From: Vitrella brassicaformis CCMP3155
Lineage: Eukaryota > Protista > Chromerida
Reading direction: 5' to 3'
Length of the DNA stretch: 64,000 nt
Assembly: GCA_001179505.1 (NCBI GenBank)
Contig: CDMY01000840.1
Coordinates: 186,001 to 250,000 of the forward strand
The notes under the pieces were generated by a model. That model searched no databases. It was not told the origin of the DNA and saw only the letters and a list, made by a program, of their open reading frames with translations. Positions 1 through 57,073 of this stretch are shown in pieces. The stretch's first letter is position 1; every line of letters begins with the position of its first letter. The translations under genes were made by a program, and so were the position numbers.

Positions 1-343
1 CTGCCGGAGTCCAGCTGTTATGATAAATGCATGGATCCACCCGATCCACGAACGTACACATAGATATGCATGCATTAGCTACACCTTGCCACGCTAGCTA
101 CGGCGCACGCGGGCGCCACTTACCACCCACCCCCACCCCACCTGCTTGCTCTACTCTACTTCCTTCCTTATTAACACCCATCCACCCACCCGTCGAACGA
201 ACCACCAAGCAACCAAACAGACAATGAATACACTGACTACATGGCATGCACATGATGTGATTGATGCATACCGAACACTTGCTTGCAAAAGACCAGACCC
301 CGCCCACACGACTCACCCTAGGGCCCAAGCGCCCCCCACTACA

Positions 344-981
344 CTACCCCCTTCGCCGCTTGATGCCTGTGTGTCGCTGCCCGTCCATCGACCGCTTGAA
401 GCCGCCGTCCTGTGTCCGCTTCTTCTTGCGTGACACTGATGCGGCAGCGGAGGGGCCGCGACACGCTCGGACCGGTCGAGGGCTGCAATACCAGCACTGA
501 GGTACAGATGCAGCCAGCCCCACATCGGACGGGGGATGGATGGATGGATGTGGAGTGATGCTTCCTCACCTACCTTGAGGATGTTCTCGCATCGGGCTAT
601 CTGCTCAGCGATGCTTGCTCTCGCCATCCGTGTGAGCGCAATCAGAGAAAGGGCCGGCCCACTGCAACACAGACACACACACACACACACACAAACACAT
701 TGCCCGGCGTGGGCCATTCATTAGTCACGACTGCGTCCTCCATCTGGGTCACATACCTCTGCTCATCGCCGCCGCCCGATGACACGTGTGTGTCGGTGTC
801 GACGAGCATTTCATGAGTGAGGTGCAGCCGGCTCGAAGCGTCAGGCTTGATGTAGATGTATGCCGTGTGCCGCTCGCCCGACCCGAGCATCGTCATGGGG
901 CAGCGACGGGCCAGCTCGCCACACAAACCAAAACTGGACACCAGATCTGACCGATGAACACAGACACCACACCCACATACA

Positions 982-1015
<34 letters not shown>

Positions 1016-2390
1016 GCCGCGGCGTGTGCACCGCACTTAATTACTCGGTCGGTATGACACGTAGACGATGGCGGTCTGTGCGCTGTTGAATAGCTACACA
1101 AAGCAGCGGATCATCCACTGGGGCATTGCCAGGTCGAAGCTCACAACGTGGGAGACCGGCTCGAGCGACGTCAGCTCAGTGGCATCGCGATTCATGAAGG
1201 CCACGCGCGCAGCAGCGGGCACACCAGTGGTGGTCGGCGTGGCGTCTCCAGAGGACTCCTGAGAAGACAATAGATGGAATAGCAGGGGGGGAATCACTGG
1301 TAGTCACTGCGTACCAGGTGTCGCTTCGCCTTGTGGAGGATGCCCAGCAGGTGTCTGGTCGCAAGCATGTAGCTGTTGGTGTCGACCTCAACGCCGACTG
1401 TGTGCACACACAACACACGCACACAAACAAGGGGTCACAGATCAATCTCCCTTGGATGGCATCCATGTGTGTGCCGTGCCGTGCCGTGCCGTCTCACTCC
1501 TTCACTCCTTCATTCACTCACTCACTCACTCGATGCCGCGATTCTGAAGTGGCTGGCTGCAACGATGTTCGGGATGCCGCGCCCAGAGCCGATGTCCAGC
1601 AGCACAGAGTCCTTCAGGATAAGCATAGCAACCAACACACAAGCAACCATGTATCGTCAGTCACGCCACACCATTGCCACTGCCCTGCCCTGCCCTGCCC
1701 TGCGACGCTCACCTCGCCCATCTGGAACTCCGTTCTGAGGATCTTGAGCAGGCGGAGCAGACTGCCCTCACTGTTCTCGCCATACATCCCTGAATCAACA
1801 TGGATGGCACAACAAAATTGCAATGAGTGAGTTAGCCACAAGCAATTGCATGATGCTGGTCTGCGGGGGCTGATACCTTACCTTCGTCAGACGTCATGAT
1901 TCTGGACGCTTCCCCACAGAAGAGCTCCTTGTGATCATACAAGGGGGCATCCGGACCGCAATGCAGACTTGGGCCCACACACCCAGCCGCCGGCATCTTG
2001 GTGCGGGTGAAACGCCGCAGCAAAGGGGTGTGCACAAGGGTGCTTCTCCAGTGGCTATGAGAGGGACGAACAAAAGGAAGAAAAAGAAGGAAATGAGCTG
2101 CAGTTGCCGACAGTGATGGTGGTTCGTGAAGCTCACTTCAGGCAACGTCCGCACGACAGGGACGAACGTCAAATGATGAGTCGAAGAGGGTTCAGGGTTT
2201 GATACCCTGTAACCCTTGTCGACTGCCGCAAGCGCATTGCATATCCACCTGTTTGCTGCATCTGCCCTCTGCGTGCTGCGTGTTGCGTGTCCGGGTTGCA
2301 TGTTAGGGTGCGTGTTTCATGTTGGACAGACTGACTACATCCAACGTACGGCAAGAACAAAGCCTTTTCCTCTGCGGTGACGCAGACCAT
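344..2390 (-). CDS. DOT1: DOT1-like histone H3K79 methyltransferase (multi-exon; in-frame TAG at 1094-1096, so possibly a pseudogene or assembly error)
   Basis: Spliced exons give MYGENSEGSLLRLLKIL (DOT1 YGE motif, ~1775), VLLDIGSGRGIPNIVAASHF (SAM motif I, ~1545-1615), GVEVD (motif II), then SHVVSFDLAMPQWMIRCFV*LFNSAQTAIVYVSYRP and GSGERHTAYIYIK, plus a basic tail (RKKKR, KRRRG). Start and end are approximate. Confidence 0.75.
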
Positions 2391-2671: not shown

Positions 2672-4638
2672 TCAGCATGGCGACAGGATGACCCGCTCTC
2701 CATCGTCGGGCAGCTTGTCCACTAGAGTGCGCCGCAACTTGCCACTAGATATCGAATACTCCAACAGACGATTCTAGTGGACAGCCACGCACACACACAT
2801 GACACACGGCCGTCCAGTGCGTTTGTGATGCGATGGGCGGTGTGCTCTAGATATCGCCTGGCTCCTATTCTGTTGACTCACCGTGGCTTGTCCGATGACG
2901 TAGAGAGAATCGCCGTACGACACCATGCCGGCCGGGTGGCGCAGACTCGGGTCGCTTATCACCTACACACACGATGCACGTGCCGGGCTTGCCTTTCTGC
3001 TTGTATCTCTCCACCCACCCCACCATGCGCCCACACTCAGTGACCTGTATCAGTAGGTGTGTCTGGGCTGAAAACTCATAGAGGGAGTGCCGCTTGACGC
3101 TGCCAATCCACACCGAATCCCTGGGACATACAAACACACTCACATGCCCTCCCTTGTGTGTATGCCACCCATGGCCTGCCCGCCTCACACACCTCAGCAG
3201 ACCCAACACACCTGTCGAAGCAGTAGAAGACGCTGATGGGTTTCTTGACGGGCAGCCGGCCGAGCAAGGCGCCTTGGTGGTTGTAGAGCAGCACCCCCAG
3301 GTCCTTGTTGGCCACGTACAGCACGCCATACTTGTCAAACGCCACACCACGGATGCGACCTGCACACAGAGAGAAAAAGTGCATGTCTCTGTCTGCGCGG
3401 GAGTGGTGAGTGGGTGTGTTTTCCCTCCTGTGTGCCGTGCCTTTCTTGGCCTTGAACTTGACAAAGGTCCCCGGGTCGAGCTTGCTCTCATATTCCTGCA
3501 CCCATTCAGCCAGCCACGCCACAAACACGACAATGGCATCCATCCACCACCCACATCCCATCGTAGACCCGCACTCACCTTGAGCACCGGCGCGACGGGC
3601 CCCGGCAGGCCGGTCTCCACGTCATAGCGCACCACCTCATGTGAGTTCTGGTTGCTCACGTAGAGATACCCGTCCCACTGGGCGAAGCCGTATGGGTGCC
3701 ACAGACCCTCGTTGTGCGCCGACCGCCGGGTCAGCACACGGACGTACTCGCGCTGGCCCTTGCTCTCGGGCTGACATGGACCGTACTCGACAATCTTGCT
3801 GTCCTGACAGAGAGAGAGAAAAACGACACACACAGTGTGGAGTGCAGACGAGCTGGTGTGCGATTGTCTGAGGCTTACGTACGTATCGGTATGCCTCGGC
3901 AACAAGCAGATGTCCGTCGCTGAGCATCATCCCCCGTAGCTCCCGCAGCTTGTGCGGCCCCGTCATGAGCACGGTGCCGAGGTTGCACCCGTCCCTCGCG
4001 TAGCGCACCACATTGTGCTCGTCGCCCGTCGACCCGCCGTGGAAGGTCACATACAGGTAAGGCGGGCTGTAGCACCCTCCTGGCGGCCGGACGTGCCGCA
4101 TGCCCTTCCACTGCTTCTTGCTGATCAGCTCACTGTGGAGCTCACTGTGCCCACTGTCACTGCCGAACGATGCTGCTGCCGTGAGATTGCTCCTTGACCT
4201 TGACGCCCGCATGATGCCATTGCCATTGTCATTGTCAGAGGAAGCCTCAGCAGATAAAGGCGGGTTGAGCTGATGCAGCTCCCATGGTTTGCCATCAGAC
4301 GGCTGCCAGCGCACAGAGGCCGCCGATGCAGCAACAGGAGGACCGTCATTGTTCCCCATGTGCTGCATCCTGCTGAGGGGGGGACGGAGGAACGCGATGA
4401 CGGACGCTGCGATGAGGGTGATGGAGATGAGGGCGGCCGCGATGAGCCGGGAGGGGGATACGGGCTGGTCTGCGGAGGGCAGCAGACGCGCTAAGGACGA
4501 AGATCTCATGAACGACGACATTATTGAGAGAGATCTGCGTCCTGAGAATATATTGAGCTTGCAGGAATCCCGCTCGCGGATTGGACTCATTGCAAACGAT
4601 GCTGGAAGGGACACGCGCGCGCGACTGTGTGCTGGCAT
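2672..4638 (-). CDS. Type II membrane protein with NHL/SMP-30-like beta-propeller ectodomain
   Basis: One hydrophobic helix (LIAAALISITLIAASVIAFL) followed by propeller-blade repeats: LRELRGMMLSDGHLLVAE, LWHPYGFAQWDGYLYVSNQ, IRGVAFDKYGVLYVAN, LRHPAGMVSYGDSLYVIG. Last exon ends ...RVILSPC-TGA (2672-2674). Start is ATG 4638 or 4590. Confidence 0.7.
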
Positions 4639-4766
4639 GCATTCAATCCATCAAAACTGGTTCTCCGCTGGCAAGTCGGCAGCCTATGTCCATGCAGTAA
4701 GCTACGAGAGCTACCTCTCATCCGTTGATTCCCTTCATCCCTCTGCTATGCTATCACCTTTATCAC

Positions 4767-7635
4767 TCACCTGCTCGTCTTCTTGCCTCCCTTCCTGCCT
4801 CCCCCGCCAGCCCCCGACCCCCTGCCGCCCTCCTCCTTCTTCTCGCCCTCCTTCTCCCCCGTCCAGTACAACACGTACTTGATGTCACTCCCCTCGCCCC
4901 GCTCCTCCTTCTCGCGCTTCGCCCGCTCGATGAAGTCGCTGGCCTCGCTGTCCTTGGGGAACGACTCGCAGCGGCCGTCGGGAAGGCAGACGGTGATGGT
5001 GTTGTCCGGGAAGCCCGTTATGGGCGCGTCGATGAACGGCCCCTTGCGCATCCCGCGGATGACCGTCTTGCGGTACGTGCTGGCCTCCTGGGTGGTGGCG
5101 TGCGTCTCCAGTTTGCCGAGGTCTCGCTTCATGATCCATGTGGATGGGTGCGACTGGCGGCCGCGCTTGCCCTTGCCCTTGCTCTTGTGGTGCGGGGGGT
5201 GGCCGGCAGCCGATGGGGCGAGGTGCGCCGAACCTGAGACAGGGAGAAGGCAACACACACGGACAAGGGCTGTGTCAGAGAGCTGGCCGTCTGCCCCCTC
5301 TCTCTCGCTCTCTCTTTTTCCGTGCGCACCCGAGGATGAGCCGCCTGCAGCAGCAGCTGCGGCACCACTGGCACTACTGGACGCCCCCACCCCCTCCCCC
5401 GCCCCCTGCTCCGTCTCGGTGTCGCCGAACAGCTCTGTGTGGATGTCCTGTGTGAGCAGCTCGGGGGCCGGCTTGCCGCCCATGGTGTCCTCCGATGGGG
5501 TGTGGTACTGGTCTGCGAGTGAGGGGTGGCTCAGCACCTCGTCCACTGTGGGGCGAAGCTCGGGGTCCCGGTGCAACATGCCCACCAACTGGATGACAGA
5601 CACACACAGACAGCACATGGATGGATGGATGGATGATGAAGTCGTGTCTGTCTGTCTCTGTGTGTGTGCGGGGGGGGGGGGGGGGNNNNNNNNNNNNNNN
5701 NNNNNNNNNNNNNNNNNNNNNNNNNNNNNNNNNNNNNNNNNNNNNNNNNNNNNNNNNNNNNNNNNNNNNNNNNNNNNNNNNNNNNNNNNNNNNNNNNNNN
5801 NNNNNNNNNNNNNNNNNNNNNNNNNNNNNNNNNNNNNNNNNNNNNNNNNNNNNNNNNNNNNNNNNNNNNNNNNNNNNNNNNNNNNNNNNNNNNNNNNNNN
5901 NNNNNNNNNNNNNNNNNNNNNNNNNNNNNNNNNNNNNNNNNNNNNNNNNNNNNNNNNNNNNNNNNNNNNNNNNNNNNNNNNNNNNGGGGGGGGGGGGGGG
6001 GGGGGTTGCCTACAAGTCCTTTGAAGTCTCCCGGCAGGTTCTCTAGCTCCGCCAACTTGGCTACGACAAAGGGCATGTAGTTCTGCACCACACACACACA
6101 CACACACACACACGAAAACGGTGCATCTTTCCTCATCCGCGCACGACAGCGGGCCATGTGATGGCTCACGGTTGTTTCCTTGATCTTGGAGATGGCCTCC
6201 TTCCCAACCACCACCACAAACACACACGCGGCGAGCGAGAAGACATCACACTGAGACAGGGAGGGAGGGAAAACATGTATGACACACCACACAAACAAGT
6301 GCCAACACACCCACACCCACACATATATTGGATAGGGTGCATTGCATTCCACCAGCTAAACTGACCGGCTTGGCGCCACAGAAGGGCACGATGCGGTCCA
6401 TCTGCACCAGCTCGCGTGGCGAGTATCTCGAGTCTCCCTCTATGGTACGCTCTACGTCAGCCGGCACCACCCGGCCATAGTCTATCAGCACCCACGCCCC
6501 GTTCTCGACACGAACGAAGTTGTCTGAGGCAGGGAGGTCACACACACACACACAGACACACAGACAAAGGGATGGATGGACTGCCACCTGATCTTGCCTC
6601 CCTCCTGGTGCGATGGTGTGTGTAGGGATCTTACCTGGTTTGATGTCTAGGTGTGCCAGGTTGTGTGTGTGCAGGAACTTGATGGCCAGGGCACCCTGCA
6701 ACACGATGTTGGGCAACTCCTGCATATATCGGAAAAGGGGGTGTGATGCAGGGTGTGTGTGTGTGTGTGTTTCTCCCTCTCCCACACCCGCTCCCCCACC
6801 CACCGATTCTAGTATTTTCCTGGTGCAGAACTCGTCCATCATGGTGTGGCTGCCCAGCTGCATCTGAACGCAGATCTGAGTGCCGTAGTCTGCACACACA
6901 CATACACACCGACACATTAACACAGACAGACAGACAGACAGACAGATGGATGGATGGATGGATGTGTAGGGTTATGATGTCATGTCATGTCATGTCATGT
7001 CGTCTTACTTTCCAGCCAGCACGAGTTGACCTCGAGTATCTGTCGGGGGAGGTCGTCCTTCATGGCCAGCTCGGCGAGGAACTTGCCCTCACGCATCATG
7101 AACAACGCGTCACGCTCACCTGCATACCCAAAACAAACACACCATCAAAACACCACACCACAATGGATGGCACTTCCCGCCCCGCCCCGCCCCGCCCACC
7201 TTCCAGCTCCCTGGACAGCTTGACGGCGTACGGGTTCTCGCCATATTTGTCCTTCACCCTCTTGACCTCCCCATAGCTGCCCTTGCCTATCTCCATCTGA
7301 CTCCCGAAGTCCTCCTTGCACCGGCTCGGCATCCCATAGTCGTCCACATCGGCGACCTCCTCGCCCAGGATCCCATCATCCATCTCGCCGCCCATCCCAA
7401 AGTCGTCGGCGGTGGCTGCAGACGCCACAGCGGCGGCGGCCGACAGGCGGGATCTGCGGTGCTGCTGGTGGTGCTGCTGGTGCTGGTGGTGGTGGAATGG
7501 GTGATCAACGTCCATCGGGTCATCCTCAGGCTGACGGTCCTCCTCGAAATTGAACTCCGTGTTGACCTGGACCTCTCGGGCGGAACGCCGAATGCGAAGA
7601 CGGCTGGGGCTAGGAGGGGTAGGCTCATCCTCCAT
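4767..7635 (-). CDS. WEE1: Wee1/Myt1-family protein kinase (catalytically intact)
   Basis: IGKGSYGEV (Gly loop), YAVK, HLDIKPDN, IDYG, EGDSRY (Wee1/Myt1 activation-segment signature), CDVFSLA, MLHRDPELRPT; His/Gln-rich N-terminus. The 3' end may extend into a further exon. Confidence 0.8.
5686..5985. other. Assembly gap (300 N) flanked by G homopolymers, inside a kinase intron
   Basis: N run with 16 G before and 20 G after. Flanking exons join in frame (GDFKGL|LVGMLHRDP). Confidence 0.95.
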
Positions 7636-33859: not shown

Positions 33860-34159
33860 NNNNNNNNNNNNNNNNNNNNNNNNNNNNNNNNNNNNNNNNN
33901 NNNNNNNNNNNNNNNNNNNNNNNNNNNNNNNNNNNNNNNNNNNNNNNNNNNNNNNNNNNNNNNNNNNNNNNNNNNNNNNNNNNNNNNNNNNNNNNNNNNN
34001 NNNNNNNNNNNNNNNNNNNNNNNNNNNNNNNNNNNNNNNNNNNNNNNNNNNNNNNNNNNNNNNNNNNNNNNNNNNNNNNNNNNNNNNNNNNNNNNNNNNN
34101 NNNNNNNNNNNNNNNNNNNNNNNNNNNNNNNNNNNNNNNNNNNNNNNNNNNNNNNNNNN
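33860..34159. other. Assembly gap (300 N)
   Basis: N run followed by a C-rich tract. Confidence 0.95.
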
Positions 34160-54219: not shown

Positions 54220-55983
54220 TTATCCCTTGCGGCGGCGGCGGTCCCTCATGAGGTCTTTCATTTTTGATCTGATCTGGGTGGCCTGGTTGCGGGCATAGTC
54301 CTGTATGGTCTTGTCCTTCTTGTCTGTGCTGGTGTTGGGGTCCTCCTGCCATTTCTTGCACGCAGCCTCGAGCTCCTGCAGGGCGCGCGGCGCCGCTGGC
54401 TGCACCCAAATCTCGTCGATGATCTCCTGGCCAGACTTCCCCTTCTGCAGGGAGGCAGGCCAGGGAGGAGACACACCAACACCACATCACAGCACATCAC
54501 AGCACATTTGGGTGGATGAGTGCACACGCAGGGCTTACGTTGAATTTGCGTCTGATCTCTTCGCCGGCCTCCTCGTATCTCTCCTCGGCGATGAGCTCCA
54601 TGATAGGCAACATGGCGGCCTGCTCCGATGGCGTCCGCAGTTCCATCCAATCCACCACACGGTCCTGCACGCAGTCACGCACACACGTGAGACGGACCGG
54701 CTGGCTATTCATCTCTCAGCTGTGCGTTACCACTACTGAGGGCCTTGTGCCTGTCCTCTGCAGCGCCATCCTGCTGCGGCGCAGCAGGCGACCCACCATC
54801 AGGCACCTCCACGCTGTCATCCACCTGCAAATGCCAATCTTGTGTGAGCAACTGGTGTGACGAATGCGTCAGCAGGCTGACCATGCTATCCGTGCGTCCG
54901 GCCTCGTGCTCCTCGCCGCCGTCGTCCTCCTCTTCGCCAACACCCAACACCTGCGCCCACACACAGACACACAGGGCGTGTGAGAGTGGCTTGGGAGGGG
55001 CATCCATCTCTCGCTCGCCCACCCCCCCGCCCCCCAACAGACCCACCTCCTTCTCTGCTATGCGGTCCTGCAGGGCCTTCTGCACCGAGGCTGACAACTC
55101 GTGGTTCGACACCTGATGGCATGCATACCATGGATGGATGGACACAGAAGGACACAAACCGACAATGGAGGGCACGGCTCATGTGTGTCTTCATTGACTA
55201 ATGGCCCACTCACCGGGCTGATGTCCTGCGGCTCGATGTCGGCCTGCGCGTAGACGTCACGACGGGACTGATAAAGACGTCAATGATTGATCCATCATCG
55301 CGTGTCTGTGTGCGTCTGTGTATGTATGTGTGCATCTAGTCACTTTTTTGTTGCATTCGGCTTCCTCCTTCTGCTCTATGGCCCGTTTGCTCCCAACACC
55401 ATTGACACCAACACTGCCACCGGCAACACCTGCAACATACTCACACACACAGCCACACACACGCATAGAGAGAGAGATGGGTGGCTGCCGTCCAGGGAGC
55501 ACAGAATATGTACCGTTGAGGGAGAGATGGTGACTTTGGTGTGATGCACCTTGTCCCAGCGGTCGTGGACGGTGGTGAGGTGCCCCTCCATGATGGTGGC
55601 CGTGCGATGCTGGCCGATCTCGCCATACGCCCTCTCCCATCGGTCCTCTTCACTGGGATCGTGCACCAGGAGCTTGTACTCGATCTGGCCGCTATCGGGG
55701 ACCGGCTGGATGGCGATGGGCTCGCTACTCCAAATGGGCACTGTGGCGGCACACGTGGTGAGCGGCAGGGCCTTCGCGGCGTTGAAATCCGGCCCGCCCA
55801 AGTTGTCATAGTTACCGCACACGCGCACCTCCTGCCCCCAGCCGCATATGTCGGTGGGCACCTCGGCGACGAACCGCACAGCTGCGCCGTGCCCACCAAC
55901 AGACTGCAAACAACAAAGGAGAGAAAGAAAGAAGGATGGATGCACCCGTTTCGTCGCGCGAATTCTTGCGGCCTCACCTCCAT
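54220..55983 (-). CDS. CBM20 starch-binding domain protein with a non-catalytic helical C-terminus
   Basis: VRFVAEV..WGQEVRVCGNYDNLG...ALPL....PIWS......IEYKLLV......WE (CBM20 pattern). C-terminus DRVVDWMELR...QEIIDEIW...; no hydrolase motif seen. Confidence 0.7.
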
Positions 55984-57073
55984 CTGCGATGCCCGCCGAC
56001 TACTGCTAATCTGCACTGCAATGCATCACCTCTTTTCTTCTGGAAGGAAAGCTCCAAATCACGGTTTTCCGGTTCCCTAGCCGCGGGCAAATTCGTGACG
56101 AGATTTTCTCGATGGGGGCGACTAACCGCCATCGATGATGGATTCCTTCAGTTTTTCCGCCCTCGCCCCCATTCCCACTACCCCCGCCCACATCTCCTCC
56201 GACTCTTCGTCTTTAGGGCTCGCCCTCGTCTGGCGTGGCTCGCCTCAGCCCCTCCCACGCCTCCCAACTCGACGCGTCGTCCGCCGCTGTTTCTCCCAAC
56301 CCGCCCTCTGTGGGACAACTGGCGTCTGCCTGTCAGCCAACTGTCAGCCGCTGAGCTCACGAGGCTCTTCGTCATTACAAGAATCCTCTATCATGATATG
56401 ACGTCTTGTGTCATTTGTGGCTTGTGTCAGCCGGCGCGATCGATCGAGGCATTCCGTATACGAGTGCATCGTCTCGTGACGCCCATTTGATGGCCCGCCA
56501 CAGCGTGGCGCCGCCCTTGTGCCGTGCGGCTCGTGCGAGAAGAATTTGTGGTCTATCTTGTCAACGCCCGTCTCCTTTCCCGACAGAGTCCTCAATCAGC
56601 CAAGCTGGTAAGAGGGTAAGTGATTTTAATCAGCCGGGCTTCACAGTTCCGTCAGCTGTCAACTTGTGGTGTGATGTGTGTGGGGTGTGTGAGATGGTCC
56701 ATTTGGCTGCCTTTGTTGTGTTTGTGTGTAGATGACATTCCCTTGTATTCTCCTCTGCTGTTTGGTGCGTTCGACTAAAGCACTCAGTACATGATGGCCT
56801 ACCACTTCAGCCACCACACCGCTGGTGAGAAACGATGGCAGTGCAATGCAAACGCCCACGTGTCCTCATGTGCCTCTGCGCAACTCAACAGGGGAGGTGA
56901 CGTCCTCCCTCTCGTGGGTGTCAAGCCGGGTATCGAGAAGGAGGACGAGAGGACGACGAAGAAGTGGCAACAGCCGGGTGAGGCGCTGCAGAGGGCGGCA
57001 CTCTTTTGCTCCCTTGGCCGCGCAAGACAACAGTCAGCACGAATGGCTGCGTCATGTGTAAGCTGATCAGCTT

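Follow-up and report, generated by a model that had tools for sequence, protein, structure and literature searches.

The window examined here, a stretch of 64,000 nucleotides from Vitrella brassicaformis CCMP3155 (scaffold C840:186001-250000, in an assembly of 72,700,666 bp and 1064 scaffolds), carries near its start a DOT1-like gene in which a TAG triplet lies in frame within the catalytic domain. The locus raises the question of whether this stop marks a gene that has just been lost, or whether the gene is still alive and the stop is an error of base calling, is removed from the transcript by splicing, or is decoded by the ribosome.

Read from the sequence, the DOT1-like gene occupies positions 344..1996 of the window on the minus strand, with 8 exons and 334 codons, of which the terminal TAG is one. 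Exon 1 (1996-1882) begins with the ATG at 1996-1994 and is followed by exon 2 (1789-1713). The SAM-binding motif I, LDIGSGRGIPNIVAA, is encoded by exon 3 (1611-1530), and GVEVD by exon 4 (1397-1315). Based on the translation and on the secondary structure of the annotated Vitrella paralogue P0017, exon 5 (1258-1045) contains a variable linker, the motifs of strands 3 and 4 (RDAT and SHVVSFDLAMP), the interrupted helix and strand 5 (AIVYVSYRP). Exon 6 (946-757) encodes the conserved C-terminal portion of the domain, LVSSFGLCGELARRCPMTMLGSGERHTAYIYIK. Exon 7 (661-574) follows, and exon 8 (496-344) contributes a CWYC motif, which corresponds to FWYCG in P0017, and ends, after a basic tail (KKKR..KRRRG), with the terminal TAG (346-344). 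The seven introns, 56-132 nt in length, are all of the GT..AG type, with 14 of 14 splice sites canonical. The order and the content of the exons agree with those of P0017. The exons were searched and aligned as separate pieces and were concatenated only for the counting of codons and stops, by which two in-frame stops were found in the 334-codon model, the TAG at codon 174 and the terminal TAG.

The identity of the gene was examined at the levels of sequence and fold. A HMMER search with the 54-residue piece preceding the stop against 1.8 billion representatives returned two Cryptosporidium proteins described as 'DOT1 domain-containing', along with one spurious repeat protein, P0001. Word searches from Cryptosporidium seeds recovered P0017 (Vitrella, 447 aa, scaffold C385), P0020 of Chromera and P0021 and P0022 of Perkinsus, as well as P0018 and P0019 of Cardiosporidium and about a dozen Cryptosporidium members; P0002 and P0003 are also family members from Cryptosporidium. 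The exon pieces of the window gene, being too short for Pfam, gave no Pfam match, and a six-frame scan of the genome with PF08123 matched C61 and C897 and not the DOT1-like locus of the window. Against the PF08123 cut-off of 23 bits, P0002 reaches 23.2 and P0003 21.9, with only model positions 21-82 (motif I) being matched; a precomputed PF08123 match is present on P0015 and P0020. A profile of the family detected a bacterial DOT1L structure at E=0.0016 and the yeast and human DOT1 proteins weakly, and the sequence alignment to DOT1/DOT1L chains does not extend beyond motif I.

The AlphaFold2 model of P0017 has pLDDT values of 72-97 over residues 40-230, and the top ~40 matches of this model in a Foldseek search of the PDB are all DOT1/DOT1L, with E values from 7e-9 to 7e-7. 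Since the model is confident and its top matches are of this kind, the designation DOT1-like, which the gene had already been given in the first-pass annotation, is right at the level of the fold, with the alveolate proteins forming a separate family. It should be mentioned that the DOT1-type class I methyltransferase fold is assigned here through the model of the closest paralogue, P0017, and not through the window protein itself. The class I SAM-methyltransferase core is shared with the DOT1/DOT1L H3K79 methyltransferases (PF08123; PDB 1nw3, 1u2z and 9ne1), and both SAM motif I (LDIGSGRG, exon 3) and the acidic residue after strand 2 (GVEVD, exon 4) are present in the window gene, whereas the N-terminal helical and the nucleosome-binding parts of DOT1L have no counterpart in the alignment of the alveolate family. 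With the other members of that family the window gene has in common the motifs MYGE, LDIGSGRG.P, GVE.D, H..SFD.AMP and FV.LFN, further SYR, DLV..FGL, PM.M.GSGE, Q... and WY, and the same exon content. It differs from them in the stop at codon 174, in the replacement of Y153 by Val and of the nearly invariant Asp186 by Asn, and in a shorter C-terminal tail (333 codons, compared to 443-484 aa in most members). The only locus of the genome above the Pfam DOT1 cut-off in the six-frame scan is C61:182871-183083, with 29.9 bits. This locus may be the canonical Vitrella DOT1, distinct from the four-member family described below.

Besides the window gene, Vitrella has three intact paralogues, on C385, C592 and C688, which brings the family to at least four copies. 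Around the stop site the paralogues are only about 40-55% identical to the window gene. Their intron positions vary: a phase-2 intron separates the R/S and FV codons in the C385 and C688 genes, three codons before the equivalent of the stop, and is absent from the window gene and from the C592 gene, the latter having extra introns within motif I and before GSGEKH.

The in-frame TAG, codon 174, is found at 1096-1094 on the minus strand, in the context CGC TGC TTT GTG TAG CTA TTC AAC, exactly as it had been quoted in the first-pass annotation. In the alignment with full-length homologues, the pre-stop piece extends up to column 274 and the post-stop piece resumes at column 276, and exactly one column is left between them for the stop, in keeping with the earlier statement that a gap-free stretch of the conserved catalytic core is interrupted. 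The downstream exons are likewise intact, conserved and in frame, as had been noted; PMTMLGSGERHT, for example, is identical in P0017, and no further in-frame stop occurs before the terminal TAG. The homologues have varied residues in the stop column, namely K in P0017 and in the C592 paralogue, E in the C688 paralogue, D in two Cryptosporidium proteins, Y in Cardiosporidium, H in Perkinsus and M in Chromera. None of the aligned paralogues and homologues has a stop there; all have sense codons, and the frame is uninterrupted through the catalytic domain in the P0017-like family, in contrast to the window gene. The three intact Vitrella paralogues have AAG, AAG and GAG at this position, and a single base change would turn any of these into TAG. 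In the AlphaFold2 model of P0017, the equivalent residue K169 falls in a helix (residues 161-173) between the strands 151-154 and 179-182. The stop is therefore predicted to lie in the helix that connects strand 4 to strand 5 of the DOT1-like fold. The residue-by-residue alignment with human DOT1L given in the first-pass annotation was not recovered by sequence search, in which motif I alone aligned with DOT1/DOT1L chains, but the structural position that it implies, the helix after strand 4, is supported by the P0017 model.

Boundaries of a real intron other than those discussed below were considered as an origin of the stop. An intron with different ends that contains the TAG is rejected, as CFV before the stop and LFN after it are both within three codons; with conserved residues so close on both sides, the stop is not removable by splicing without their loss. 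The intron found at R|F in the C385 and C688 genes is absent from the window gene and does not explain the stop either.

Apart from codon 174, the window gene is very well preserved. Of the 23 residues that do not vary within the family (23 columns, 12 homologues), it retains 22, the exception being the Val at Y153, and its conserved core is 60% identical to P0017. Over the well-aligned core columns, identities of the window gene and of P0017 are, respectively, 71/162 and 77/162 to C. felis, 76/162 and 74/162 to C. andersoni, 58/162 and 64/162 to Cardiosporidium, and 69/145 and 64/145 to Perkinsus. The pieces of the window gene resemble the distant outgroups as much as the intact paralogue P0017 does. 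No frameshift was found in the gene model. Considering the lack of frameshifts, the canonical splice sites, the retention of 22 of 23 invariant residues and the outgroup identities similar to those of P0017, a nonsense mutation at this site must be recent.

A second copy of the gene offers a comparison. Scaffold C494 (about 55,920-56,980) contains a DNA-level duplicate of the window gene, introns included, which spans about window 40-1957 and is ~90-95% identical where it can be aligned. This duplicate is decayed. It starts within exon 1 and has no ATG, and the 3' part of exon 3 through exon 5 is deleted; exon 6 has deletions of 42 nt and 33 nt and exon 7 one of 10 nt, a CGA codon of exon 8 has become an in-frame TGA, and a frameshift is present as well. 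The window copy is far better preserved, so that, if it is dead, it died far more recently than the C494 duplicate. The family evidently shows both birth and death of copies. No allelic or second copy covering the stop site was found in the assembly, C494 being the only other copy and lacking the 3' part of exon 3 through exon 5. It is noted that the (CT)n microsatellite that makes up much of intron 5 (window 985-1015, minus strand) and the (GT)n microsatellite that makes up much of intron 6 (window 670-700, minus strand) are both mostly lost in the C494 copy.

We propose that the stop is a real and very recent nonsense mutation in a redundant paralogue, and that the window gene either has just become a pseudogene or represents a null allele of CCMP3155; we place the probability of this reading at roughly 0.55. 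We infer that position 1096 truly has a T and that the gene yields no functional protein. A single nonsense substitution would have occurred very recently in the window paralogue, at a codon that is AAG or GAG in the others. Translation would then end at codon 174, within the helix that joins strand 4 to strand 5 in the Rossmann-like fold; the predicted product is a 173-residue fragment without strands 5-7, and the transcript would be a probable target of mRNA surveillance. The loss would be tolerable thanks to the three intact paralogues. The locus would thus be a putative young unprocessed pseudogene or null allele, which it resembles in that a single substitution disables a gene that is otherwise whole and belongs to a multi-copy family, with an older decayed duplicate elsewhere in the genome. 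The first-pass annotation had listed four options (consensus error, recent nonsense allele, readthrough and an exitron-like splice) without a choice among them. The recent nonsense allele or young pseudogene fits best, and a consensus error is less likely after the base correction of the assembly with ICORN, as described below.

The treatment of this gene in the databases is consistent with such a reading. In the Vitrella genome report, models with in-frame stops were marked as pseudogenes, and 165 of 22,817 genes were counted with internal stop codons (PMC4501334). The window gene is most likely one of these 165 stop-containing models. The paralogue P0017 (C385) is present in the protein databases and the product of the window gene was not found: no database protein for it came up in word searches seeded with P0003, with P0017 or with the 54-aa piece, products of 96-245 aa, including a 173-aa one, being outside the range of these searches. 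A missing protein is consistent with the authors' marking of in-frame-stop models as pseudogenes.

The stop coincides with the end of a potential intron, and this feature requires separate consideration. The candidate exitron, GTGAGC...GTGTAG, is 51 nt long (1144-1094, minus strand), is in frame and encodes VSFDLAMPQWMIRCFV and the stop. The first-pass annotation had pointed out this segment, and its existence, its length as a multiple of three and its content of conserved residues are all borne out. The donor-like hexamer GTGAGC (1144-1139, minus strand) consists of Val-Ser codons where the homologues have Tyr-Ser/Thr, the paralogue codons being TAC TCA, TAT TCC and TAC ACA. The Tyr, Y153 of P0017, does not vary among 12 homologues and is replaced by Val in the window gene; across its codon and the Ser codon next to it, the hexamer differs from the paralogues in as many as six bases in a row. 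Conservation within the domain is highest in this segment, 11 of its 16 residues being identical to those of Cryptosporidium felis P0003. Its GC3 is 15/17, which is of the coding type (exons, 0.75; the introns have 54% GC). The 15 introns measured in the window gene and P0017 are all longer (56-132 nt). GTRAGY occurs 175 times per 128 kb, and from this density the chance of a coincidental in-frame GTRAGY 42-162 nt upstream of a new TAG is ~5%. Joining the donor at 1144 to the acceptor of intron 5 was rejected, since the frame is broken with either acceptor.

The readings in which the gene is alive have to be weighed against a recent nonsense mutation. According to one of them, the 51-nt segment is spliced from a substantial share of the transcripts, giving a 316-residue, non-catalytic DOT1-like protein without VSFDLAMPQWMIRCFV; the unspliced mRNA would keep the premature stop and be degraded. 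The GTGAGC donor is the same as the donor of intron 2, a T/G-rich tract precedes the acceptor as in introns 3 and 6, and the donor was created by replacing an otherwise invariant Tyr codon. The overlap of the stop with the AG of an in-frame GTGAGC...TAG, a coincidence of about 5%, weighs against a plain nonsense mutation; on the other side, a chance donor is expected at this same frequency. In addition, the multiple-of-three length and the contained stop fit the intronization model, in which young introns are predicted to be multiples of three with a stop (Catania and Lynch 2008, PMC2586383). However, the segment surpasses the rest of the domain in conservation, its composition is that of coding sequence, and at 51 nt it falls below the range of the measured introns. 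No 316-residue protein was found in the databases within the searched length range of 246-782 aa. According to the P0017 model, splicing would remove strand 4 together with all of the helix that leads to strand 5. Because the segment covers these elements, the spliced product could not keep the methyltransferase fold, and the earlier suggestion of an exitron-like splice that switches activity fails on this point: the spliced form cannot be an active enzyme, and the donor could have arisen by a coincidence of ~5%. Known exitrons and cases of intronization (PMC2586383) are similar in being short, a multiple of three, bounded by GT..AG and located inside a long exon, with a premature stop. Here, by contrast, removal of the candidate segment would delete an essential part of the fold and not a dispensable piece. 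We regard splicing in a substantial share of transcripts as unlikely, and it is still somewhat less likely that the locus has been caught in intronization, with the segment now spliced from part or all of the mRNA and the enzyme turning into a non-catalytic paralogue. Under intronization, the nonsense mutation would have made the AG, an earlier replacement of the Tyr-Ser codon pair would have made GTGAGC, and mRNA surveillance would remove the unspliced form. If splicing were true, the locus would provide a natural, datable example of the Catania-Lynch model in a chromerid, with a segment of an exon turning into an intron.

A faulty base is an alternative about as improbable as splicing of the segment. 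The true codon would then be a sense codon (e.g. AAG, GAG, CAG or TAC), the TAG being an artefact of the consensus or of a minority allele, and the gene would encode an intact DOT1-like enzyme of 333 residues. All but one base of the gene appear intact, and it is as conserved as the annotated paralogue; so well-preserved a gene could still work, with the called base being wrong or that of a minority. The stop column is varied (K/E/M/H/Y/D), and since it tolerates many residues, several single-base neighbours of TAG would be acceptable there. About 80% of the Vitrella reads were bacterial (PMC4501334), so the effective coverage was lowered. On the other side, the assembly was made from SGA-corrected reads and passed through three iterations of ICORN base correction (PMC4501334), both of which argue against such an error. 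The sequence at the site is also unique, as C494 lacks the exon with the stop and the other paralogues are only about 40-55% identical, and the nearest N gap is 4.6 kb from the stop. Translational readthrough, in which a near-cognate tRNA would decode UAG in the context UAG-CUA-UUC and allow some full-length enzyme to be made, we consider the least likely of these readings. In mammalian cells, C after any stop codon makes a weak stop, and stop-CUA(G) promotes readthrough; UGA-CUA alone gives ~1.5%, and the UAG version of the OPRL1 signal is ~3-fold weaker than that with UGA (PMC4132726). The C after the stop is consistent with readthrough by this measure, and the frame beyond the stop is open and conserved to the normal end of the gene. 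However, CUA occupies an ordinary Leu codon position at which the paralogues have CTC, GTC or ATC, so that nothing suggests a selected readthrough signal, and no paralogue or homologue has a stop at the column of codon 174. No more than a few percent of readthrough is to be expected, from data that are mammalian and not alveolate, and in a plant system CUAUUA after UAG gave no stimulation of readthrough (PMC4132726). Substantial readthrough, if true, would raise the interest of the locus. Reassignment of UAG in the genetic code is rejected. Among 57 HSP70 exon matches across the genome, four touch a TAG, 11 a TGA (15 codons) and one a TAA; these stops are sporadic, as expected at the edges of exons. 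With no excess of TAG in the HSP70 matches, and with the window gene itself terminating in TAG, as the C592 paralogue does, UAG is an ordinary stop in the Vitrella genome.

If a recent nonsense mutation is the right reading, the finding is an ordinary one and a point of annotation, namely that one of at least four Vitrella paralogues has been freshly inactivated. Together with the older decayed duplicate, the fresh inactivation would document rapid birth and death in the DOT1-like family. This family is common to Cryptosporidium, Cardiosporidium, Chromera, Vitrella and Perkinsus and may merit attention apart from the stop. As for the surroundings of the gene, the upstream neighbour is a multi-exon gene on the minus strand (window 2673-4640), which ends in a TGA ~680 nt upstream of the start codon of the DOT1-like gene, and the window contains two scaffold gaps, N runs of 300 nt each, at 5686-5985 and 33860-34159.
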